Assembly (NCBI GenBank): GCA_964035545.1
Contig: OZ037771.1
Span: 3,359,628-3,423,627, forward strand
Length of the DNA stretch: 64,000 nt
Origin: Bugula neritina
Lineage: Eukaryota; Animalia; Bryozoa
Direction: 5' to 3'
Shown here: positions 46,801-64,000 of the stretch, piece by piece
How the letters are laid out: every line of letters begins with the position of its first letter
Position numbering within the stretch: the stretch's first letter is position 1
Notes under the pieces: generated by a model
Databases searched by the model: none
Told to the model about the DNA's origin: nothing
The model's input: the letters and a program-made list of their open reading frames with translations, nothing else
Translations under genes and position numbers: made by a program

Positions 46801-48375
46801 TCATCAAAAAGTTATATTAAAAGCTAGCATAAATGTTTTCTATTAAAATCCTATAAAACATGCAGTTAAGTGTTGAGCGTAATCTGTAAATTTTAGAAAC
46901 ATTAATAGAAACTTTTCTTACTTATTAACATATAAAACCCACCTTGACCCGCTTTTATTAAAAGCGACATTGGTGAGAGGCAATATATGAGCTCTAAGTA
47001 CTTTGAAGAGATAGAATGTCGAGTCTTGCGTCTGCGCCAACTTATCCTGCAGACGTTGAACTAGTTTCCTTACCTACACGTGAACATTCCAGAACAAAAC
47101 ACAATCAGTAGGTGATGTAAGTAACTCCACTGTAGCATATAAAATTATATATATAGAGTCAAACCAATTGTCAAAGTCAATTGCATTTGGTAATCAACTA
47201 TAAACTGACAGGTGCAAATTTTGCAGAAACAAGTAATGAATTACAGTTTTGTTGACTCAAACCTTGCAGTTCTAGGTAAGGCATCAGAGCCAGTTTAGTT
47301 TTTATCAAATACAACACAAGCTCTAACATCATAAAATTGGTGTTAAAAAGTATAACAAACTTCACTTGAAAAATTACTACTATTAAAATATGAAAATAAA
47401 ATGTGTTTAGGCATAGAAATGAGCTACTTAACAAACCTGTTCAACTTTGGAAGGTGTTATAAGCTTCTCTGTTCGTACCAAATCATCCACAATTGCATCT
47501 ATATCGGACCTAAAAAAATCAGCTACAAATTCAACACCAAAAAATAAGAAAAAACTAGTAAACATAAATAAAACTTATCAAATAGCTTTTCAATGACAAA
47601 AACGTCAATTTCCATCAAAAATTAATACAAATATTTATTGCAAAAAAAACTGACGTTGGTTGAAGGTTTAGTATATCCAGAGTTCTTTGCTTTAGTAGTC
47701 CTCCTTGCTCATACTCCAAAATAATTCCTAAAATAGATTTATCACTCTCACTCTGCAATATTCTGATAACATACAAAAAGAAAAACAGTTAAAAAGCCCA
47801 TATTGCAAAAATTTTTCCACAAGTTTCTATTTCTAATATCCTTACTAATTTCAATAAAATTGCAAACAGCAAATAGTAATTTACTAAGTTATATCTTTCA
47901 ATTCTTTATGATAATATATATATCAAAATGAGTAAGCTAATTTTATAATAAACATAAATATTAGTTATCTAATTAATAAAATAATTTAGATAAGCTATAA
48001 TACTAATACTTACAGTTGCTAATACTAATAGTAATAGTTACTAATGCTTAACTCATAACTGATAACTGTTACTTATTACTAGCTAGTAGTAGTAGTAACA
48101 CTTGACTTACTATTTCTAATAACAATATTGATACTATCCTTGGCATTAATAATAGACTAATAGTAATAACAACAATATTACCAATAGCGTTACTAAATAA
48201 CAATAGTATTAGTAACAGCCAGCTACTGTTAGTTTCACTTTCAGTTTGAGTTTAGATTAAGACAATAGACATAGTCATGGTGATGGTGATAGACTGACAT
48301 AGTAAAGCAATTGCACGTATTATTTTATCGTTTACCTGGTGGGTAATAGCGTAATAAAAACTTTTTCAACTTCAT
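43890..48375 (-). CDS. DAW1: Dynein assembly factor with WD repeats 1 (ODA16/WDR69)
   Basis: N-terminus [23 protein letters not shown], then [18 protein letters not shown] and [15 protein letters not shown]40 repeats, and terminal exon 43890-43924 [11 protein letters not shown]. About 11 exons with GT-AG borders. Confidence 0.97.
44936..45145. mobile_element. hAT-type MITE (210 bp) with a perfect 8-bp TSD, in a DAW1 intron
   Basis: Termini CAGGGCTGGG...TCCAACCCTG, flanked by GTACCAAC at 44928-44935 and 45146-45153. Internal (AATTAC)n subterminal repeats. Confidence 0.9.
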
Positions 48376-49162
48376 TATATTCGTGTAATTAAATAATGAA
48401 TGTAAATAACTCAAATTTATTGTATAAGCAGTAACACTCAGAATGCACAACGTAGGTCGAAGGAAGAAAAATTTAATCTCTACTTCTCAAACCAAACAGG
48501 AAATGGAAGCCTAGGAGAATTTAGCCGAAGCCTGTGAAAAATGAGTTGGGGGAAGTTGACATATCTCAATAATGTCAACTTTATCTAGATTCTGAACTAA
48601 TAATATAGTAAGTTGAAACGCCCTTTACTAAACACGTATATAATGTCTTCTAAACGACTAGGTTGGTAGCCATAAAAATTAAGTCTGGTGAAGGGTTTAT
48701 ATCTGAAAAGAACAAAAGTAGAGGAGACAACTCTATAAACAACCATGCATATAATTATTTGCCGACTGAGCCTGTGTTTTTGGGAGTTTCTATATCAAAA
48801 CATAAAATTATAACATGAATGTAAACGGCAAAATACAACAGCTCTAAATTGTTTTAAAATGCTGAAAAAGTCTTTGACTTTTAAACTTTTGTCTTACTGC
48901 TTAGGTTCTTTGCAGTATTGTTTATTGTGTGCATGCAGTTTGGGAAATTTGTGTGAGCTAATATTATTGTTACATGGTATGGATAGTATCAGTTTGTGCA
49001 ACAAAAATCTTAACTAGTAAAGATAGAGCTTATCACTAATGTAGTGTGTAGTGAATTCAGGTGATTCTAAAGCTTGCTTTATTTATCATTTAACGGAAAT
49101 TGCATACAAGTAACAATTTGAATAATAAGGAGAAATAGCGGAGGAACTTTACTAGTCATGAG

Positions 49163-52100
49163 CTAAAAGCTTAAAATCAAGGCTAACAAAATGAAAGTAA
49201 AGTGAGTCCAACGCAAAGAGGGCGCAGTTCCAGTAACATCATTGACGATCTGTTCAAGCAATGTTTTATTGATAGGGAGATCAGTATCCAATGACTTTGA
49301 ACTGGTTGTTTCTGGTGAAGGTCGTTGCGATGAACCAGGTGAAGGTTGTTGGGATGAGCCAGGTGAAGGTCGTTGGGTTGTAAAGGGTGAAGGCTGTTGG
49401 GTTGTAAAGGGTGAAGGCTGTTGGGTTGTAAGGGATGAAGATTGTTGAGGTGAAGACACGGTGGTTCCTTCTGTAGTCGTCAAGTTACCGAAAGTAGCTT
49501 GAGCATCTTCATCTATATTTTGTTCTACGGCTTCATTTAAGGCATCTTCAACATCTAATACTGAATATAAACACAGGTTTGATTTAAATTCTAGACAAAA
49601 TATAAGAATTGCACAGATTTTAATTCAACTCAAATCTACTCAATAAACCCAGCACCAACTGTACCTGGGAAAACACCACCAGAAGCTTGCAAGTCTCCAG
49701 GAGATGGCGTGGTTGTTGGAACTTCAGTAAACGATTCAACTTCATCAACTGCTTCTTCTATCAACTCTTGATCCACAGAAGGAGATTCCACGACACTATT
49801 AACTACTTCTTCTACAGACGAGTAGCTGCTAGCTACAACCTGCCAACACACACAGCAGAACTTAGTAAACAATCAACTATTGGTCAAACAGTTGAAAACC
49901 ATCCAATAAAAACACAACTTACATCATCTTCTGTTCCAGATTCCTGGGCAGCTAGACAGTCATATGAACACATGTCTCCAAAACCATCCACGTCTGCGCA
50001 GACATCATTGCAGTCCACAGACCTCTTACGTCGAAGTTCCTTCTCCTTATTGATTACTTCACTTCTGTCAACTGCATCGGGACATCCATCAACCAGCAGA
50101 CCAGTAGAAGCTTCCAGAAGAGGTCTACTTGACCTCACATATACGTTGACAATCTCTCTGTTGAGAAAAGAGCAGCAGATAACTTATTAGTATAACTAAC
50201 CATATATCTAAAGTAGTGTTGATATTTGCTAGTAGCCCCTGTGGTGTAACGGTTAGCGCAATAGATTGCAAGCCAGAGGTCTGTGGTTCGAATCTCGGTT
50301 GGGGAAATATTTTACATCGGAAAATGAAACAATTTTAAATGATCAGTTGGAGTATTTAATAGTTTCCAAAAAAGTGACTGCTTACATCTTACAGTCCAGG
50401 AAAAACAGTAGACTTACACAAAGTCAGTCAAGAAACACTTAGGGTAGGTTATGCTCACCCTGAAGGATTGCTGAAAGCTATAATTGTTCCAGACTTTAAC
50501 TCTTTGATCACAACTCGCTTTTGACCCTTAACCTCTTGTGTATCTATTGTAAGAGACAGGCTTTGCACATCTGTGAGATGCTGAAATATCACAAGATATC
50601 ATAAATACGCTGAAAAATATCCCTAAAGAATTTCTGACAGATTACACTGTTTATTATTTATTTTATTATTTATTAAAATACTTAAATATAATCTTTTGGC
50701 TATCATCTACGGACTGTTTGAGGGTTGCATGCTCAAACGATTTTATTTCATGATGAATTTTGTGCAAACATGTCTTGAATTAATTTAGGATTTCTGATTA
50801 CTTGTTGATGGCATTTCTAGTCTACGTTGAAGTTTATGGTATATAAAACGAATACTAAGTATTGCTGACTTTCAGTGCATATAATTCTTAGCTGCTGCAT
50901 AAGTGAAATGGTTCAATGATTCGTTTAACAGAATCAGAAGTTTAGGTGAATTTTTCTGGAATATTCTCACTTCATGTTGAACTTCAGCGTCTTCTCCCGC
51001 ACCAGCTTCGTCAGAGCTGAGCTTTTTGCTTATTTTAAACTGTGGAGCTTGTTCTAAATTAGTGAGAGAGTTGAATGTGTATGTCACGTAATCGGCCTTG
51101 TCGTCACCAACTTGCTTTTCCACAATAAACTTCACCTGTAATTCAAACAATGCTTGAAATAAACTACATAATATTTATAATATATAGTTGGTAGTAGACC
51201 CACAGCTATTACTTACACACACCAACAACAGGTACAAATCTCTGAAAAGAAGTAAAAAAATAGAAGCCAATAATTATTTTTGTCACTATTCAATATTTTG
51301 CTAATTAACAAATGCTTGAATAAAAAATTCATTTCTTTCAGTCATGATTTAACCTACATTAACTTATAATATATATTTAACTTATATAAAAGTTATTAGG
51401 ATATGAATATATTTGAAACGACACACTCAAAATTGAACTTAACTCACAAGTTCATCATGGTACATGTGAAGCCATAAATTATGAGATTATATTATATAAC
51501 TATAAAATAAAAGCCTGTAGTATATTGCATTGAATAATATTACAATACATGATGATATATATTATCATATAATGCAATATTGCATCATACCATATGAGAT
51601 GATAAAATATGTTTATTGCTTCATCGCTATTGATCTATTTACATATTACCTAATACCTTCATCAATCTTTACCTAGCTTTAACTAAAGATAATGAACAAA
51701 TAACTAAAAGAGACTATTGGTAAAATTATTCAAAATCTTTAAAACGTCCACAAGTATTCAAACAGACAAGACATAATGCTATCAGAAGAAACAGCAAGTT
51801 GCTATCAGCAATACAGCAATATCAACCTATAAATCTGCTGCTATCATAAAAGGAGAAAATATTTGTACCTCTTTGAAAAAAGTTCCAGTAACAGAACTGG
51901 ACCACCTGGCCAATGTGCCTTCCACTCTAAACCAATCATTAGATATAAGTACAGTTTTTGCAGATGCAACTAGAAGGTCTGAATCTGCACCAGATTCGAG
52001 TTCCAGGGTTTCAGTGGTGGACATATACTCTGGTATAGGCATGGGCGTGGATGTGAAACCCGATGTAGTTGGTGGCAACATAGCTGTTGGAAATGCAGAA

Positions 52101-54691
52101 CTGTCAGGTGCGTTTGTTGCACCGTACAGATATTTGGATTTATAGGTAAAATATTCCAACTCATTACATGTTTCAAACTTGTCGGGATTCTTCAGAGATT
52201 TAACGTGTGGATCACCTACTACCGCAAGTGTGATTCTGTCGTTGGTCTTGAGAGACTAAAACACATAATTCTATATTCATCAGCAACAAAAATTTTTTTA
52301 AAGTATTAATTTAGATAAACATAACATAGGATGTTGTAACAAACTATTTGCATTAAAGCCGAAATATCATAAAATAAAAAAGTTATGGTAGTCATTCAAC
52401 AACTAGTAAAAGTAACATTGAAAGGGCACGCACCAGTTTGGTTTTGTAATTGGACACTTTAGTAGGTATATTCACAATGCCGAATGTGCCGATGCTAATC
52501 ATAGGTAGTACTTGTTTCATGGCTGCTCCCAGGTCTACTTTACGTTGTGCACAGAAAGGATGGAGATGCTTTGCAAGGCATCGAAGAGCTGCCGCTGTAG
52601 TACTGTAAATTTAACAAATGGTTCAAGTTGAAATAACAGCGGCATGAGACAAAAGCTCATTCGAGTATATAACTTTGTCAAGTTTGTATTTCTGTAAGAA
52701 ACGAAAGGTAGGCGCAGTGAGGGAGAAATTTAGAAAAATATTGGCTTGATATATATAATAAGAAAAAGCATCAACATTAAATTAATTAGGGTTAGTATCA
52801 CTTTTCCATTCAGGTAAATTTCAACAAATAGTTTTAATTTTGCAAAATGAATAAATGTTAACAAAAATTTAATGAGCTAACTTGGCAGTTGTCTGTAAGG
52901 TGTCAACTATCTTCATTATATCCATTTCCTTGTCTCTGTTTGACTTCAGTATGGCAGACATAATTACTTCTAGTCTTCCCACAAACTTATTAGTGTGGCA
53001 TGCTTCAATTGCTTTTTCTAATGGCTCAAGCTGGAAAGCTTCAGAAAGAGCTAAAAGATGTACCAAATATTAGAGTGGAATGAAAATTGCTAGACTAGCC
53101 CTCATTAAAGTTGACTACAGTAAACTTTAACTTTAGGTATAAAACACCAAAAAGAAAGGACAACTCTAACAAAGATAACCTTTTTTTTATTGAAATGCTG
53201 TGCAGAGAATTTTTATAACAAACACAGTTAAGTTGAAATATCAGTACACTCACTACTTTATACATACATTTGATATTCATCCAAAAATAAGTTACCATCA
53301 AATAACTTACATGAGGCATCTTGTAATTTATCCGAATCATGAAGGAAACAGGATAGAAAGTTAAAAGCGAATCTATAGTTTACTTTGAGAACTAAAACAC
53401 AGAAACGTAACAATTTTAAACTAAAAATAAAATGCCTGTTAAAAGAACAAACTATTTGTATGAGCCAAATAAAAAAAAAATTTACGCCACTTCACATGAC
53501 AAATAACTCACACTAAACGTCGCCATTTCTTTTATCAAATCTAACTGAGAAAGGTAACCAACTGTAAAATACCTGTGAAGTTTGTGATTATATTTATAAG
53601 AAGCACACAAAAGATATACAATCAGCCTATTCAGGCTGTGTGGTGCTGATATTTTATTTTAGCTCAACCCTCCGATCTGAAATAGCAGTATCTTTCAACC
53701 TTGAACTCTAGTTTCACCTTTCAATGCAGGTTGGCTGGGAATGAAGCCAGAGTTGTCCCTCGTGCACATTCTCAAAGGCAGAGTTTCCATCCAGGGTTTA
53801 ACATCTGGCCATCTGATTCCACACGAAGAGCTGTCAGCTTCTGCCTCCATAGAGTTCCGCATGCATGGCATGAGAATATCGAAAAACCTGAAAAATGAAC
53901 ACCAAAAATAAAATACTACTAGCTGTGTCCTTTATAGCCATAAAATCTTCACCACACACATGAATGAAAATTACTGCTATAAAACTAAACTGTGACTAAG
54001 TATATGCTTACATATAAAACAGTTTTATAATATTTCTGTAATTAAATTGTTAGTTTTGAGGTAATTTGATTGCTAAAATAACATAAAAGACCTGTAGGTT
54101 TTATTTTGATACAAGGCTTATTTGTTACCATCAGAAAGAAACCTCAAATGTTGGAACAAAAATACTATAAAAGCCAACATGTTTCTCTTTATTGTAATTT
54201 GTTAAAAAATGAACTAAGCTAAGCAAACACAAGCAGAAGTGAGACCATAGTGCAAAAATTACGGACTGATCTAAATTGAAACATGACTCAAGCACAAAAA
54301 ACTAATCAAAAGGTCCTTTTCCAAATCAACAGAAGAAAAAATTTCACTTTCTAGGCATGTGCATATTTTAAATTACAATACACTCAGCTTTGAATAAATA
54401 GTTTTCAAAATATTCTCATTTCTAAACAGACCTGCAGAAGTTGCGCACATATCGGGGAAAATTGTCAAAACTAAAAACATTTTCTTCTTCCAAAATTGCT
54501 TTGCTCTCTTCAGCAGAGAAGATTTTGCTGAATTCCTTTGTTAGCAGCTCATGCAGCATAGAGCCGGGCTTAAAGAACTTTATACCGATAGCGTTCTTTA
54601 CATACGACAAAATTGGAACCATTGTGGATAACTAAAACGTATTAAAATACTCGTATGTATTCACCAATTAGCAGCTCTTGAGTAAGTAATT

Positions 54692-54751
<60 letters not shown>

Positions 54752-57700
54752 AAGTCATAAAGAGACTACAATTTAGCTCATGCAACAACTTACATGGTCA
54801 AAAGAAGTTAAACTTTGTAGTTTAGATTTGTCTTCCCCACAGAAACTTTCTGTAAAGCAAAAGCATCGACTTTATAATGTAATATATTTCAGCAGCATAA
54901 ATCTCAACAAGTGTATAACTTTACATCACATTATGTGCGATAGCTAAAATTGATGTTGATGTTGGACCTATCTATAATTCACAATCACAAATTTTAATGA
55001 GAATTTTCACTACACACTTTGGAGTCATTCATATATTTAAGAATTTCCCATATTTTATAAACGGTTTGTAAATAGCCTAAAGCAAGCTAACCAACTTCAA
55101 GGTCATACGTTTCTAGGTCATGTTGAAATAACCAAATACACAGAACAAAGGATAATTCTTGAGCATTTACATTTAAAGCTTTGAGGAGAAAAATGGTATT
55201 AGCCACCAAACATTAGGCCACTGGTGTTGGAACTATCTATAATTCACAATCACAAATTTTAGTGGGAATTTTCACTACACGCTTTGGAGTCATTCATATA
55301 TTTAAGAATTTCCCATGTTTTATAAATGGTTTGTAAATAGCCTAAAGCAAGCTAACCAACTTCAAGGTCATATGTTTCTAGGTCATGTTGAAATAACCAA
55401 ATACACAGAACAAAGGATAATTCTTGTGCATTTACATTTAAAGCTTTGAGAAAAAAATGGTGTTAGCCACCAAACATTAGGCCACACCCATAAAAGTTTG
55501 AATACGCCTGTATATATACAACAAAGCACGGTTCATGAAAAAACTACTAAACTTACCATTAACTACAATTTTTCGCTTCACAAATCCCATCACAGATGTT
55601 GTGGCTTGAAGCAAGTTTGTAAAACCCAGAGTTTGCTCTTTCTCAGCAGACGGTTTCTTAAACAGAAACTTTTCTTTACCTTCTTTAAGAGACTGATAGA
55701 GTTGAATGGCGTTGGAGCATTTGATCTCCGGCTCTGATCCTACAGTTAGAGCTCATTGCAACTGAATCTTAAAACTACAAACTAAAACCTACTTGAGTAC
55801 GATTTATAAAATGGGAAAAAAATGAGTAGTGTATTGCAATGTCAATGCTAAATATAATAAAATGAAAGCAAACTTGCCACATGTGAATTAAATGAACTAA
55901 GACATTATAATTTATTAAATAGATTTCTAACCATTTCTGGAAGTTTTTTTTTAGTTTCTTGAAGTCTTTTAAAATATAGATTGATGGCTACATAATATCA
56001 TACATAAACATCTTATATTCTGCAGCCATGTAATCCAAGTTTAAAAAAAAAGTGCGGAACCCCCTCGTGCACCCCTAACTCCACCACTGGTTCACCTCAA
56101 CATCACAATTACTTCATTGGTTAAATTTTTTAGACAGCTTCCTATGACTCAGGGCTATGACTCAGGAGTATTTAAATTAATAAAAAGTTTACCTATTGGT
56201 GCTCATGATATTTGAAATATACACATGACGCCCACACACTGGCGCAAAGTCACTTACTGAAAAAGCGCTGCACCACTTGCAGTGCTGTCATGGTTGGCTC
56301 ACGGGCTCCTTGAATAGAATATTTAGATTTTTCATCAACTACTTCTTCAAAAGCGTCCCAATCAAAGAGTTTCTGTAATATATTTTATATTTCCCACAAC
56401 TTCGTACACCCAAAATCAAAAAGTTCTTTTAATATACAAAACTTGACATTTCCTAAAAAACCTCACACCCATCATATGTTGACACTAATAAAAAAGCCTC
56501 ATTTTATGATTAAGTTAGTATATTGATACACCAATAGTAAGACAGGGTGTAAACTAACAGTGAATTAACCAATAGAAAGATAGTACGAACCTGGGAGGCG
56601 GGGCCATTCAGCACAAACATGTAGAAAGAATGGAGTTCCTCTGCGAATTCCAATCGCATGTTGAAGAGATTCAGAACTTTTTTGACTAGATAAACAAACA
56701 AAAGAAATAACTTGAAATTTTTCAATGCATAAATATTAAACAATTACATAATTTGGTAAAATTTTGAATTAAAATTTTATTTCTGAAATTAAATTGCAAG
56801 TCGTCAAATAGGTTTTTCAAAGCATACCAAATTATAATGCAAATCTTTAAAATATTTAATGTTTAAATATACAACAATAAATTAAAACAACAAACAATCC
56901 AAGCCCACACAAAAATCTAAGACCATATGTTTCAACATTGTGCACTTATTGCTGCAAAACCAGACAACTATTGGTAATTTCAAACTAGACCGTAGTTTGT
57001 AGTGAGATAACTGTATGTCATGCTATTAAAGATTTTCATTTTAAACCCTTTTTGTTTAAAAGCATTTTTAACAAAAACTCTAATACATTATTACTTTTAT
57101 AATTAGTTCAATTGAAGAACATTTCAAATTAAAATGAAATCAGAGACTTTTCTGTTAACTCAAGATTTCCCAAAACGCTTCTTTTCACAGAGAGAGCACA
57201 ACTACCGATTAAAGTAATTAGAATGCTATCAACAAGGGATGCACAAGAGAAGAGAGACAACCAGGACAGTAGAATGCCCTTTATAGCCTGAAAATTATTC
57301 TTTTCAATAGCCAACAAATGGAGGTTGCAATTAAGTCAGCACCTAGTCTACAGGTTAGAACTGAAGCTAATCCTGCAGCCAATCAAATTTTTAGATGGCA
57401 AGACAGCAATAAGCTGAGTGAGTTTATACACCAGCTATGAGTGATATCAAAGCCTACAAATTTACTTTTGAGTTATTATATAATACTAGCACAGTAATGG
57501 TAGTTTTTAAAAGTCTATATAATATAAAGGTTATGAATTTCTTACCTTGAAAAACTTTAAGGAGTTCTGTTGGGAGGTATTTCTCCTTTTGTGATTCAGT
57601 CAGGCCTGCTCTTTGTACAGCCTAAGTTACAAGATAGACAACTCCAAACAATCATTCTCTAAATTTATAGTATTCTTAAACAGATTAGAGCAGAACAGTA

Positions 57701-59825
57701 CTGTGGTTGGAAGCGAGTCATTCTACTTAATTTTGTACACACTTGATGCCTTTAGTTTTCAACTATTTTTCACAATTTTGCTGCTAATGTAGATGTTCTT
57801 GTCTTAAAATGATAAAATATTAGCAAATACAGCTGATCGAAAGATCGACTGTTTTTCTAATTTTGCTCAATTTTTTATGCTTTTTCCTAATTTTTTAGTA
57901 AAGTGCTGACAAGATGTTTTTTTTTCATCACAGTTTGTATTTCTATATTTAGCTCATGACAATGCTGTTGTGCTTTAATTTTGCAGAACCCCCTCCAAGC
58001 AATATTTTATACTTAAAAGCTTCTAAAATCCAAAACTAATCAACATCTTACTCAGCTATTCTCATTAGAGCCAAAGCAAGGCTTTGAGTGGAACAAAGAT
58101 ATTTTACATTCTAAAGTTAACTACTTTATTATGGCACAAATACTTTCATTTAAAATAGATTTAAATAGATTTGAGGCTAATTATTAATCTAAAGTAAAGC
58201 TGATAGTAGAATGAGTTCAATAAAATAGGCCTGACCTTCTGAAAAGAGGGTTGTGACAAAATATATTTATTGAAGGCCTCCGCTGCTTGTACCCTTTCAA
58301 ACTCTGTTTTCTTATCGTTTACAGAAACCACTTCTTTTGACACTACAAGACAAAGAATAATTGTAGTCGTTGATAAAATCCCAAAACTTTACAGACTTTT
58401 CACTCTAAAACAATTCTGAAATATTTATCCAGCAAAAATTACTTGCCTTTATGTTTGAATCTTGCGTATAATTCCTTTTCTGACTTTGAGTTTTGATACC
58501 CGGCACTTGACTTTGTGATATTCATCTCGCTCTTTTGTTAAAAAGGTACATTGAAATACAATAGATTAATTGCTATCCGTTAAGTGTCAACCTTACAATA
58601 TGCTTCAATATACCAGCAGTATGTCTGCTCAATCCTATATGATCTGAAAAAACTGGAATGAGAATATTCACTTCCACTCACCAGTGACACGACATTTCAA
58701 AAATGACAATTGGAAACAATGACTTGGAAAACGAACAATTCACCAATAGACAACTCAAAAATAGACAATTATAAAATGAAGAATATTCAACATGGACTAG
58801 TATCTGGGTGGATCTACAATAACTTTTGTAAACAGGTGCATTTTAAAATTGAAACTATTCGGTATCTAATTCTACTTTCATGAGAGGCCTAGCTGATTCG
58901 GACTTTCTATTTATTGTTGACGTAGTCTATGTTGAATATTCTTCATTTTCCAAAAGATGTCTATTTTCCAAATGCCACTTTCTAATCGTCTATTTTCGAG
59001 TTGTCTATTGGTGAATTGTCCATTTTCCAAATAAATCTTTTACTAATTGACATTTTCGAATGGTCGTGAATTTCACTTACCAGTGTCTGTTCCAAGAACT
59101 TTCTATTGCTTTCCGCAGGACAAGCTACTGAGTAGATGCTGTCATACAACTTCTCTTCTACACGAGGGTGTAAACTCTTTTTCAAATACGCCTTTTCTAT
59201 CAAGTCATATCTTTCCCTTTCTTCCTTGCTCAGCTCATTTAGTCCAAACAAGTACTCTTTTAAAAAGTACGGGTTATCCTTAGCAGGAGAATTCAGTTTA
59301 TCATCAGTGCTTCTCTTTTGAGGCTACAAAACACCACATAAACCTACATAGTGAAAACTTTAGATAGTTCAGTGCATTTATTTGCTATGTCATATCTACA
59401 CACATACACACACGAACCCACGCACACAAATGCGCATAATGGTGCGTACTTATACAATTATATTTTAAGCACCTACTAGTTTGTGTACGAAGCTACCGTA
59501 TGTGTTTTCGACTTGTTCGATTTTGAGTTAAATTAAATTAAAAACTAAATTGCTTTTTGCACACTGTCCTAAAGAACTCGACAATTTTACATTCTCAACT
59601 GACAAACTTTACAGTATATATTCTTGTTTTCAGTAAATTCGCTCACTTTTCGCATAGAACTTTGAGCGCCTTTAGCAAGCTTGACTTTTTCCAACAAACC
59701 TGCAGAGTTCTCAGGAAAAACGTCATCAATACCTAAAACAAGCAGAGGGGCACAAATAGTAGTACTACTAGTACTACTAATAGTACTATTAATAGTAGTA
59801 CTACTAGCACTAATAGTACTACTAT

Positions 59826-59860
<35 letters not shown>

Positions 59861-59868
59861 ATAGTAGC

Positions 59869-59935
<67 letters not shown>

Positions 59936-60169
59936 ATATTAGTAGTATTAGTAGTAGTAGTAGTGGTAGTAGTAGTATTAGTAGTAGTAATAGTAGTAGT
60001 AGTAATAGTAGTAGTACTAGTAGTGGTAGTAGTAATATTAGTAGTATTAGTAGTAGTAGTAGTGGTAGTAGTAGTATTAGTAGTAGTAGTAATATTAGTA
60101 GTAATAATAGTAGTAGTAGTAGTGGTAGTAGTAGTGGTGGTAGTAGTAGTCTTAGTACTACTATTAGTG

Positions 60170-60230
<61 letters not shown>

Positions 60231-61267
60231 TAGTAGTAGTGGTAGTAGTAGTATTAGTAGTAGTAATAGTAGTAGTAGTAGTGGTAGTAGTAATAGTAGT
60301 AGTAGTAGTAGTAATAGTAGTAGTGGTAGTAGTAGTAGTAGTAGTAGTATTAGAAAAAGAGTATTTTATTTTTACTTGAATCCTCATCAACTATGAGTCT
60401 GTCGATTTCCTGCCTGTTCAAGTAGTCACCGATCGAAATAGGACTAGTGTCTTCTACACTATTTGATTTCACGACACTTTTGGTATACACGTTCAACTTG
60501 GGCTTAAAGTACCTCTCCTCTGGTGAGAAATATTCAGTCAGTGTCTTCAGCTTTTCTTTGTTCGGGTATTTGGGAAACCGCAGCGCCTCAGCTACATCAT
60601 ATAGAAAGTATTTCCCCGTTTATAGATTTCAGAATACTTTTGTAGTTATAAAAGAACAATCTCTGGCAACATATTACACATAGCTTCTTCCACATAATAT
60701 CTGCAATACACAGTAACTATTACGGATACACTGTAACAAACTTTCACAAACTGAAATTTAATAAGCAATGATAGATACACACTATGCAGAGGTACTGATC
60801 ATATAGCATACCAGCGCCTTTTGCTACCGTCCACTCTTCATCTAGCCATTTTAAATCCTCATCTTCATTTACCGTGTCTTGTTCGTCTCCACTGAGAACG
60901 TCCAGCATAGAGCTGACAGCCTCTGATGGATATGATTTAACACAACCAGATGGAACTGTAAAACCCCAAAATCAAAATTGACAGCTTGTTAAACTGCTCT
61001 ATCAGCCCACAAACAACACATTTGTCACTAAATACGAGACATCTTGGTTCTCAAAACCTTTAAATTTGACACATGGCTAATTGAATCACACTCACGATCA
61101 GTGCTGAAATCATCGTAGATCTTTCTCATGGCTGAAACTAAACATGGCTTTACAATTTTCAACAAACTAATAGGACCACATGCTGGCTGGTTGGCCTTTG
61201 GTAAAGGTACTCGTCCATTTAAAGCTAAAAATAAAAAAACACACACAATGTAACCTGTGGCAAGCAT
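49163..61267 (-). CDS. Large (~1,270 aa, ~23 exons) secreted GPI-type protein: long unassigned N-terminal region, RGM/vWD-like GDPH domain, S/T/P stalk
   Basis: Phase-consistent exon chain from the signal peptide MLATGYIVCVFLFLALNG (61096-61267) through 60812-60955, 60376-60591, 59647-59732, 59081-59323, 58447-58531, 58236-58342, ~57546-57621, ~56591-56685, ~56258-56372, ~55556-55739, ~54794-54849, ~54431-54631, ~53719-53887, ~53514-53561, ~52882-53050, ~52434-52603, ~51869-52255, ~50971-51135, ~50459-50581, ~49923-50157, ~49664-49839 and 49163-49560. Motifs GDPHVKSL..FETC, LISNDWFRVEGT, LLVDGCP, RRKRS and CSYDCL. Hydrophobic C-terminus HFTFILLALILSF* with no cytosolic tail. Confidence 0.8.
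50234..50305 (+). mobile_element. tRNA-like SINE head or tRNA pseudogene in an intron
   Basis: A box TGGTGTAACGG and B box GGTTCGAATCT at tRNA-like spacing, but the acceptor, anticodon and T stems pair poorly. Confidence 0.6.
54693..54750. repeat. (TA)n microsatellite
   Basis: TA tract in an intron. Confidence 0.95.
54960..55485. repeat. Recent ~265-bp tandem duplication (2 copies), intronic
   Basis: gttgga(c/a)ctatctataattcacaatcac...cattaggccac occurs at 54961-55221 and 55226-55485 with few substitutions. Confidence 0.95.
58684..59076. mobile_element. MITE/foldback element with long imperfect inverted arms
   Basis: acaattcaccaatagacaactcaaaaatagacaatta (~58736) is the near-perfect reverse complement of 58983-59019. 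aaaatgaagaatattcaacat pairs with atgttgaatattcttcatttt. Termini GTGA...TCAC, flanked by tcacca/ttacca. Confidence 0.8.
59757..60351. repeat. (TAG/TAC)n microsatellite filling an intron of the RGM-like gene
   Basis: About 595 bp of triplet repeat inside the 643-bp intron 59733-60375. Confidence 0.98.
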
Positions 61268-62728
61268 TTCCACTCAATAATGGCAGCACACACAACATAG
61301 CAGTGTGGGAAATGTATAGAAATATAGTATAGTTATTTCAAATGCGAGACGTAAAAGCGTTTAATGTTCAATTGATAAATTCTAAATACAATAGTAGTCT
61401 TAGAGTTTACCCTTCTTAGATAACATCTTTTTCTCGAGTACTTTATCTGCCCCGCTGACTTTCCCGGACTTGTCAGAATCTGATTGGCCATTGGTACAGC
61501 AGCTGGCTAGTAACATAAACACCCAAGTATATAATAACAATCGCTTGTCCTGTAACATGTTGAAGCACAGCTCAACCTGTTACTCTACCGATTCCATACT
61601 ACTGATAGAAATGCCCATAAAAATATTTCAAATATTTTTGAACATTTCATGCATTCTTGAAGTAAAACAAACAACTGTAGCACAAAGAACTTTTCTCTTA
61701 CTAAAAAAAGTGTTTTGTGCTTTCACTTATAAAATCAGAAGCAAACAATGTTGATAGTGATATGCATTAGTCATATACAATTTTATTTAAACATCAATTG
61801 GGTAATTGCGTCGCATCACAACTTTTATTAACATACACAACTTCATTCTTTACTTCAGAGAAAGCACAACTGTGGGTTGAGACACTTTGACCACATCAGT
61901 AATAATTATGATGTAGGTCTAATCTATAGAGCGTAAACAAGACCATATATTATATATTACATATACTATACATACACTCACACATGTATGCATGTATTTA
62001 TAAAACAGAAAATAATGCATTTAGAGGGTTTAAGTAAAGCATGCTAATAATAATAATGAGTGCTCTATTCACAAGTAACGGATATAATATATCGCCAGCA
62101 TACTGACACCATAACTTAGAAGTCTCCCTTCCCTTCAAACAACCAACAGAAGCTACGAGCTGCTCCGATATCACAAGTATATTATAATATAAGTGCTAGA
62201 GTTGAACTTGTAACCATGCAAAAACCTGACCCTATGGCTACACGCAAACTATAAACCTAATGAATTGACATAGATCACAGGCTATGCCATAAAAAAACAA
62301 TTAAATCTAGCAAGGGCTCTGCTTTAGTAAAAAACACATTTCAAATTTCATAGCTAGTAATCATTAGGTTTCAAACAAACAAATAATATTTTAACACTGA
62401 AGGACCTGAAAATAGATTATTTAATTGCAGCCAAAGAAAATGGTCACATTTCTTTCACCTTTCACCGCCGTGATCCTGCACGGGTGGCCAAAGATAATAT
62501 TTACTTTATATGTAATCAAATAGAAACATTAAAAATAAATTGCCAGCAAAATAATTTTGCTATCATTTATTGTTATAAAATATTTTGTGTTTATATCATT
62601 TATTTGCAAAACGACCACATTAACGAAAAATGCTAATATTTATTTACTAAATACAGCTCTTGTGAAACTTTCTTGTTAATTTGAAAACATTGATACACTT
62701 GAGCTTGACATTGTAGACACAGATAGTG

Positions 62729-63681
62729 TTAGAGTATTCCTCCATAACCTAGCACACATATAAGTATAACCATTATGGTGGTATATACAGAAGGGTGGGT
62801 AGTAGTTCCGTGTGAAAAGGCTTCGGCTAAATTAGAGTTGTTGAGGAAATTAAAGAAAGGTGTTGTGCCTTCCGTAACAGAGATTTTACTAGTGACAGAC
62901 ACTTGCTCTGTTGGCGCATTAGTGGATGGCTTAGATGTAGGGGGTTTGGTAGTAGGGGGTTGAGTGGTGGATTCAGTGGTGGCAGGGGGTTGAGTGGTGA
63001 GGGATTGAGTGGTGGATTGAGTGGTGATGAGTTGAGTGGTGATGGGTTGAGTGGTGAGGGGTTGAGTGGTGGATTTAGTGGTGGGGGATTGAGTGGTGGG
63101 GGATTTAGTGGTGGGGGATTGAGTGGTGATGGGTTGAGTGGTGAGGGGTTGAGTGGTGGGGGATTGAGTGGTGGGGGATTGAGTGGTGAGGGATTTAGTG
63201 GTGGGGGATTTAGTGGTGGGGGATTTAGTGGTGGGGGATTTAGTGGTGGGGGATTTAGTGGTGGGGGATTGAGTGGGGGATTTAGTGGTGGGGGATTGAG
63301 TGGTGGGGGATTGAGTGGTGATGGGTTGAGTGGTGGGGGATTGAGTGGTGGGGGATTTAGTGGTGGGGGATTGAGTGGTGGGGGATTGAGTGGTGAGGGA
63401 TTGAGTGGTGGGGGATTGAGTGGTGAGAGACTGAGTGGTAGAAGAATCAGCTACTGAAGATGGGGTCACACCTGCAGACTTGATGACTGTTGCAGCCATA
63501 TCTCTATCACCAGAAATGTTGGCTGATTTTTCCAACTTCATCATGGGAGTTGATGCAGTAGTTGATTCATTGTCAGGCATCATAGCTGAGGTGGTAGACT
63601 GCAGGTTAGCAATCAGCTGTTGTTCGTCCTCGGCTATATTCATTTCTGCGGCTTCATTCAGAGCTTCCTCCATCCCCTCAA
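62729..63681 (-). CDS. Terminal exon (mucin stalk plus GPI-type signal) of a tandem paralog of the RGM-like gene; the rest lies beyond the right edge
   Basis: Phase-1 exon starting VEGMEEALNEAAEMNIAEDEQQLIANL, versus VLDVEDALNEAVEQNIDEDAQATFGNL in the 49163-49560 terminal exon. Then (TTQSP/TTKSP)n and a hydrophobic end VYTTIMVILICVLGYGGIL*. Confidence 0.85.
62940..63440 (-). repeat. Coding 15-bp minisatellite (TTQSP/TTKSP/TTQPL units)
   Basis: gattgagtggtgggg-type units, about 30 copies. Confidence 0.95.
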
Positions 63682-64000
63682 CTTTATCAATAGACAAACA
63701 AACTCCCATAAAATTTGCTTAAAGTAAAATATTTTGTGAAGAGTTTTAATTGAAAAGTATTGGCGTTGATGTATAATACTATAATTATTGTAAATGGGAA
63801 CATTTTATTAGTGCCAGCATCTAAAATTGGTAAAGTTAAAAGATGATGAATGCACATAGATATGCACACCGTTAGTAGAATGAGGTCATTTATTAGCTAT
63901 TTCTTAAATGTTATTAAATTTCACAATATAATTTGTGCCAGTAGTGTAAAAGTAAACTATTAGCTGTTACTGAGACAGTAGTTAAAGATTAAAGTTTTAA

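Follow-up and report, generated by a model that had tools for sequence, protein, structure and literature searches.

A likely two-chain, self-cleaving surface glycoprotein built on a remote RGM_C domain and encoded by tandem genes in the bryozoan Bugula neritina

What kind of protein is encoded by a long series of small exons on the minus strand of a 64,000-nucleotide stretch of the Bugula neritina genome (assembly GCA_964035545.1, contig OZ037771.1, positions 3,359,628 to 3,423,627; G000:C7:3359628-3423627 in our numbering), in which motifs of the RGM family follow several hundred residues that resemble nothing familiar? The whole of this stretch was analysed and is referred to hereafter as the window; positions are those of the window and features lie on its minus strand unless otherwise given. 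We consider it likely that the gene encodes a 1,228-residue secreted cell-surface glycoprotein of a lineage-restricted type, which would be divided into two chains by self-cleavage at an Asp-Pro bond and which is built on a remote version of the RGM_C domain. What is new here is the architecture; the self-cleaving domain type that carries it is known.

Splice sites were placed from the stop-to-stop translation of the minus strand together with the DNA itself, giving a chain of 21 exons (61267..49163) that joins into a single open frame of 1,228 residues. All 20 introns are of the GT..AG type and every junction is phase-compatible; the frame opens with the ATG at 61267 and reaches its sole stop at 49165-49163. 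The preliminary description of this locus had proposed such a chain at these coordinates, and one large protein is indeed what it yields, although 21 exons and 1,228 residues replace the ~23 exons and ~1,270 residues envisaged there; the motifs it quoted are all present and in the order given. Throughout, database and fold searches were run with single exons or open reading frames (ORFs), spliced models being used for local alignment (MAFFT, hhalign) only.

On sequence grounds the 21-exon chain is confirmed as a real coding gene. A tblastn search with the exon peptides, covering the window and 76 kb past its end, identified four tandem genes on contig C7: A (the gene described here, minus strand), B (minus strand, just upstream), and C and D (both plus strand), which share the same exon order from the signal-peptide exon to the stalk. 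When the exon ends of A are projected on B, C and D, they fall at exact GT/AG sites in most of 26 exons and within ~10 bases of such sites in the others, and stop-free spliced models can be built for exons 12-20 in all four genes and for several distal N-terminal exons in C and D. Nonsynonymous differences per site (pN, 0.25-0.45) are far below synonymous differences (pS, 0.63-0.84; synonymous sites are saturated) in every partition of the exons (C-terminal, and proximal and distal N-terminal), and we interpret A-D as old duplicates under purifying selection over their whole length. A direct search of the genome with the exon that carries the GDPH motif found relatives close by only.

The RGM motifs lie in residues 736-1038 (~300 residues), a region that we conclude to be remotely homologous to RGM_C, which in RGMs forms a partial VWD domain. 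Exon 16 (51869..52255) encodes the first strand of the domain, the GDPH motif (residues 749-752; codons 52216-52205, containing Asp750-Pro751) and FETC, followed by a 57-residue Ser/Thr/Pro-rich insert (52147-51977) and then LISNDWFRVEGT...GTFFKE. Exons 17 (50971..51135, with an E|V donor common to all four paralogues) and 18 (50459..50580, with ...FSNPSG) form the middle of the domain, and exon 19 (49923..50157) supplies LLVDGCP, a polybasic RRKR (residues 1002-1005, 50033-50022) and C..C....C.YDC, aligning to the "GCP ... CVFD" block of RGM. The resulting order of motifs—GDPH, xxTC, LI.N(D/E)(W/Y/F), GCP, C.(Y/F)DC—is shared with the RGM family (RGMA, RGMB, RGMC and DRAG-1; RGM_C is PF06534), and across 21 family sequences the conservation of G, D, P and H is 90% or higher at each position.

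Domain models were assembled from exons 16-19 of A-D, of a fifth family member, of two genes on contig C6 and of contig L016, and were compared using hhalign with an alignment of 111 vertebrate RGMs and ten RGM first-exon fragments close to the Bugula RGM. The four paralogues matched at 71% hhalign probability (E 3.8e-5, score 43), the core family at 45% (E 2.2e-4, score 38), the family minus the C6 genes at 95.2% (E 2.9e-8, score 65) and all 21 sequences at 96.8% (E 3e-10, score 79); the last of these matches comprises 195 columns and spans the whole of RGM_C, from GDPH to CVFD..TGD. Against these real scores of 38-79, 40 column shuffles reached at most 28.3 and reversed alignments 12-15. A second, transitive route runs through the C6 genes, to which the core family aligns with E 1e-21 (and to the fifth-member group with E 1e-35), and whose exons match Pfam RGM_C themselves (E 7e-5 to 9e-5 over positions 6-51, 4e-4 over positions 189-221). 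It is this combination of profile-profile match and transitive link, as opposed to any direct Pfam or PDB match, that argues for homology to RGM_C.

Exon by exon, 20 candidate exon ORFs gave no Pfam match to RGM_C, RGM_N or VWD (up to E 10 for RGM_C). The profile comparison called for in the preliminary description returns a remote hhalign match, and this for RGM_C but not RGM_N. In phmmer and hmmsearch runs against PDB sequences, neither the GDPH exon nor a profile of the four paralogues nor two broader profiles gave anything significant, and the ESM Atlas returned no usable match to the exon of paralogue C that carries GDPH.

Several of our observations weigh against the interpretation that we favour. 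The gene model rests on genomic sequence, and within it exon 4 and the exact exon 2/3 junction have splice logic alone as their basis. No exon reaches the threshold of any informative Pfam family; at the exon level, the PDB search lists RGMB at E 0.84-1.1 and FCGBP VWD domains at E 0.25, in each case via GDPH..TC alone. The core family reaches just 45-71% hhalign probability once distant members are set aside, and the β-sandwich of VWD/RGM_C type for residues 736-1038 is drawn from sequence profiles. The mature protein has an odd number of Cys residues (13 + 6), the polybasic site is missing in paralogue C, and self-cleavage, the glycosylphosphatidylinositol (GPI) anchor and convertase cleavage are all read from motifs.

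How would such a protein be processed? VWD domains carry GDPH between strands 1 and 2 and self-cleave at the Asp-Pro bond, a reaction that requires both the Asp and the His (PMC10880436); in MUC4 the split at GDPH separates a large outer chain from one bound to the membrane (PMC10880436). By analogy with RGMs, MUC4 and FCGBP, the strained Gly-Asp-Pro-His turn that follows the first strand would self-cleave between Asp750 and Pro751 during secretion, giving a large N-terminal chain and a membrane-anchored chain. Some VWD domains hold strand 1 by a disulfide and others are without it (PMC10880436). RGMs have C-x-(L/M)-F-GDPH, whereas no member of the present family has a Cys in the 13 residues before GDPH, and the tethering disulfide of FCGBP is likewise absent; a tether through a strand 1 disulfide is hence not expected. 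The two chains could be held together by strand pairing or by a disulfide from elsewhere in the protein, or could be unlinked, and release of the N-terminal chain may be possible.

A second cut, which could release the ectodomain, is conceivable at the polybasic site that follows GCP and is conserved in most members: A has RRKR (1002-1005), B has RPKR, D has RRRRKR and one C6 gene has KRKKR, and L016 and the fifth member show weaker basic runs at this alignment position. The site is most likely of convertase type, to judge from its sequence, and lies between GCP and the last Cys cluster, a position that presumably corresponds to that of the RNRR furin site in hemojuvelin, after the GCP motif and before the last Cys block of that protein. 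Furin cleavage of hemojuvelin at RNRR produces soluble HJV, and cleavage at GDPH gives hemojuvelin heterodimers (PMC4395201).

Both termini fit a secreted, membrane-anchored protein. The N-terminus has a typical hydrophobic signal segment, with a predicted signal peptide at residues 1-18, and the protein ends in a hydrophobic stretch of 15 residues that follows small residues (TGTAPS) and has nothing cytoplasmic after it; similar GPI-type tails end B, D and a C6 gene, and the tail is probably a GPI signal. The proposal of one large secreted, probably GPI-anchored protein, with its signal in exon 1 and a hydrophobic C-terminal tail, was upheld on these points. Between the domain and the tail runs a ~175-residue stalk encoded by exon 20 (49665..49839, acidic and Ser/Thr/Pro-rich) and exon 21 (49163..49560, Ser/Thr/Pro-rich with (T)TQQPSP(F) repeats, the hydrophobic C-terminus at 49210-49166 and the stop). 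Ser, Thr and Pro make up 37% of this stalk, which qualifies as mucin-type; the Pfam matches that it draws are all of low complexity (DUF3432, Mucin, Cornifin).

The part upstream of the Asp-Pro bond measures 750 residues (732 once the predicted signal peptide is removed) and not the ~790 suggested earlier, but the suggestion that it is large and matches no known family stands: as far as its sequence can be compared, the mature N-terminal part of ~730 residues has no known counterpart. Residues 19-735 contain 10% Lys and 9% Glu, together with 13 Cys at positions conserved among the paralogues. Exon 12 (54432..54631), folded alone, is predicted by AlphaFold2 to form four helices at moderate confidence (mean predicted local distance difference test score 73.5); we infer helicity for the remainder of the N-terminal part. 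Profiles of exon 12 and exon 13 match just the four cluster genes in the genome and find nothing among PDB sequences, and the exon 12 profile retrieved two fragments only from a large protein collection, both probably Bugula DNA in metagenomes. Exon 13 (53718..53887) encodes the Cys-rich segment C..CG.RWP..RPW.E.LP.R.C, which the preliminary description had likened to the helical bundle of RGM_N. That likeness did not survive: a profile of exons 12-15 aligns to the RGM alignment at GDPH only, and Pfam RGM_N misses the locus. We also considered whether exons 14-15 resemble the exons found upstream in the C6 genes, and rejected this, there being no similarity.

If the RGM_C likeness reflected the common VWD superfamily and not descent from RGMs, the protein would be a MUC4-like or generic VWD membrane mucin, a reading that we judge unlikely. 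The resemblance is real in several respects: the exon-level PDB search lists FCGBP beside RGMB, the family has mucin-like inserts and a mucin-like stalk, and MUC4 is similarly split at GDPH into outer and anchored chains (PMC10880436), as a GDPH turn in a VWD-type sandwich also separates a large extracellular chain in FCGBP and MUC2 D4. Nevertheless, the best Pfam family for the related Bugula exons is RGM_C, including the CVFD block that lies outside VWD proper, and the hhalign alignment extends through the RGM-specific GCP...C.YDC. Exon-level Pfam scans found no C8, TIL, NIDO or AMOP; the protein differs from the MUC4 type in having none of these and no EGF modules, in an end that resembles a GPI signal more than a transmembrane helix, and in an upstream part that is Lys/Glu-rich, with scattered Cys and at least partly helical, as opposed to a mucin repeat.

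Could the chain conceal two or more genes, an upstream one for a secreted helical protein and a downstream one for the GDPH domain, stalk and anchor? A model built from genomic sequence leaves room for such a division, and the exon 15/16 junction, in phase 0 on both sides, would be the place for it, as a break there leaves both frames intact. Yet exon 16 opens in the middle of a strand, with neither a Met nor a signal peptide of its own, and exons 2-15 contain no stop-terminated end and no second hydrophobic segment; exon 1 holds the sole signal peptide, and strong hydrophobicity recurs only in the C-terminal 15 residues. Exon 14 (52882..53050) and exon 15 (52434..52602, an LRC...C helical segment that adjoins the domain) are moreover collinear with exon 16 in A-D and the fifth member, and also on L016, a metagenome contig from another source that carries exons 14-19; exons 15 and 16 also occur together on L034, again from elsewhere. 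We consider separate genes distinctly improbable, and the lack of a start in exon 16, the single signal peptide and tail, and the fourfold repetition of the unit from exon 1 to exon 21 with conserved splicing support the assignment of exons 1-21 to one gene.

That the protein is a true RGM orthologue (BMP co-receptor and neogenin ligand), simply enlarged, is very hard to sustain: it has the ordered GDPH, xxTC, LI.N.., GCP and C.YDC motifs, a probable GPI-type end and a convertase-type site placed as in hemojuvelin, but no RGD, no Cys before GDPH and no RGM_N similarity in the region preceding it, and Pfam RGM_N and RGM_C match a different locus (C1:527131-537431) while missing this one at E up to 10. 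Given that the RGM_N half is missing and that C1 carries a canonical RGM gene, the protein does not appear to be a BMP co-receptor of RGM type, and the earlier RGM-like label applies in the restricted sense of a C-terminal ~300 residues with intact GDPH that is remotely homologous to RGM_C. Other differences point the same way: the protein is some three times as large as an RGM, exists in four tandem copies, has ~730 unrelated residues upstream, an in-domain mucin-like insert of 25-340 residues and a long mucin stalk after the domain, and no exon that passes a Pfam cut-off.

The canonical RGM gene (G000:C1:527131-537431, plus strand) was identified in a six-frame Pfam search, in which it scored 29.6 bits for RGM_N and 81 and 103 bits for RGM_C. 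It contains CTLFGDPHLITF and a GPI-type end, and has a big intron with long coding-looking simple repeats (L020, L021, L027). A six-frame genome search with PF06534 returned this gene along with weak matches on C6, C4 and C2, and none at the A-D cluster; a genome search with PF06535 returned C1:527131-527349 and a repeat on C239, the A-D locus going unmatched at E up to 10. The C239 repeat (G000:C239:300000-392000) is a tandem array of at least 14 copies, all interrupted by an in-frame stop, that score 20-28 bits against positions 1-47 of Pfam RGM_N; this match may be spurious.

Comparison among the family members reveals how far the copies have diverged. Between xxTC and LISNDW, where RGM has no residues, A-D have, in what would be a loop of the domain, an in-frame Ser/Thr/Pro-rich insert of 57 residues in A, ~25 in C and D, and ~340 in B; the B insert consists of 13.5 copies of a 57-nt unit at 96% identity, in frame and rich in Thr, Asp, Ser and His (L005:680-1451). 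Paralogue B is arranged head-to-tail with A (window 62700-63720 and beyond; L008, L012; C7:3422300-3439500), its last exon lying inside the window at ~62.7-63.7 kb. Identity between A and B is 53-73% over exons 12-15 and rises to 80% in exon 19 and 96-98% in exon 20, a difference that suggests gene conversion between the two genes at the 3′ end. Segments resembling exon 5 and exon 8 are present three times in B, indicating triplication of an internal module. In paralogue C, between exons 13 and 14 (L010:1403-1642, plus strand), there is an extra ORF, absent from A, whose translation is a thrombospondin type 1 repeat (31.1 bits for Pfam TSP_1, against a cut-off of 21.6).

A profile that included metagenome fragments found a fifth member (C7:211738) and further genes at C6:3.24-3.27 Mb. 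The fifth member is divergent (C7:210300-214000; L038, L039), with FGDPH, no insert, and exon 19 split in two. At C6:3241000-3262700 (L040-L042) there are at least two genes whose domain is shorter and more like that of RGM. The C6 and C7 genes share with A the domain, the GPI-type tail and a polybasic site ahead of the last Cys cluster, and the C6 genes differ from A in being much closer to Pfam RGM_C and in having other upstream exons. Among 1.84 billion representative proteins, a profile search returned 17 matches, namely 15 exon-sized fragments of the family, derived from metagenome and SRA contigs, and two others (P0014 and P0016), which we rejected as unrelated low-complexity proteins. 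No full-length relative or RGM was among these proteins, and the family consequently appears to be absent from public protein sets save for exon-sized metagenome fragments. The preliminary description regarded the architecture as a new one, and full-text searches of the literature turned up no account of such a family.

What the favoured interpretation would mean is that the self-cleaving RGM_C/VWD module extends beyond the small, conserved signalling proteins of the RGM family, and that a bryozoan has reused it as the membrane-proximal base for large, fast-evolving, lineage-restricted ectodomains. The family would offer a natural test of GDPH cleavage without a tethering disulfide, and a set of candidate surface molecules for an under-studied phylum, even though the domain type itself is familiar. 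A bolder proposal, to which we give little credence, is that these are surface proteins that a colonial animal sheds on demand, whose N-terminal chain is held by strand pairing only and freed by force, low pH or a convertase, with a role in recognition or adhesion. This proposal draws on the rapidly diverging copies—variable inserts, gain of a TSP1 exon, module triplication and 3′ gene conversion—and, if true, roles such as larval settlement or self/non-self contact between colonies would come into view.

The remaining exons of A all belong to the N-terminal part. Exon 1 (61096..61267) contains the start codon (61265-61267), the signal peptide (61267-61214) and the first conserved Cys pair, and has homologues in B, C and D. 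Exon 2 (60812..60955) is bounded by AG and GT sites, joins in phase 1 to 1, and is retained in the three paralogues, where its splice sites fall as predicted. Exon 3 (60376..60591) is weakly conserved in C and D (an RFPKY...YFSPE motif), and its splice sites there agree with the projection from A. The least certain exon is exon 4 (59647..59732), which is phase-compatible and has no significant paralogue match. Exon 5 (59077..59323) ends in a tandem donor, GTAAGTG, that is also found in paralogues C and D; we set its donor at the second GT (59077) because this alone stays in phase with exon 6. The first GT of the tandem and a donor at 59044 were rejected by comparison with C and D.

Exons 6 (58236..58342) and 7 (57546..57621) were placed from splice sites and paralogue comparison, as were exon 10 (55557..55739; E10) and exon 11 (54794..54849; E11). 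Between these, exon 8 (56591..56685; labelled E7c) has a conserved EELH.FY...NGP motif, and exon 9 (56258..56372; labelled E8) has a homologous ORF in paralogue C. An ORF at 57335-57132 was discarded as an exon candidate, the conserved exons 57621-57546 and 56685-56591 joining phase-compatibly past it, and one at 55987-55932 was discarded as phase-incompatible.

Downstream of the stop, an AATAAA lies 80 nt away (49083-49078), which is weak evidence in so AT-rich a genome. The intron before exon 4 (intron 3) contains a ~530-bp imperfect (ACT)n microsatellite (59830-60350), whose 267-residue poly-Thr "ORF" (poly-Val/Leu on the plus strand) is a mechanical, non-coding product of the repeat. Intron 10 carries two near-identical copies of a ~270-bp element (55090-55212 and 55355-55462) with the same ORF text, probably an interspersed repeat. 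ARAGORN called no tRNA in window 48000-64000; a tRNA-like stretch in intron 18 (50235-50310), with a T-arm-like GGTTCGAATC on the plus strand, is probably a fragment of a tRNA-derived short interspersed element.

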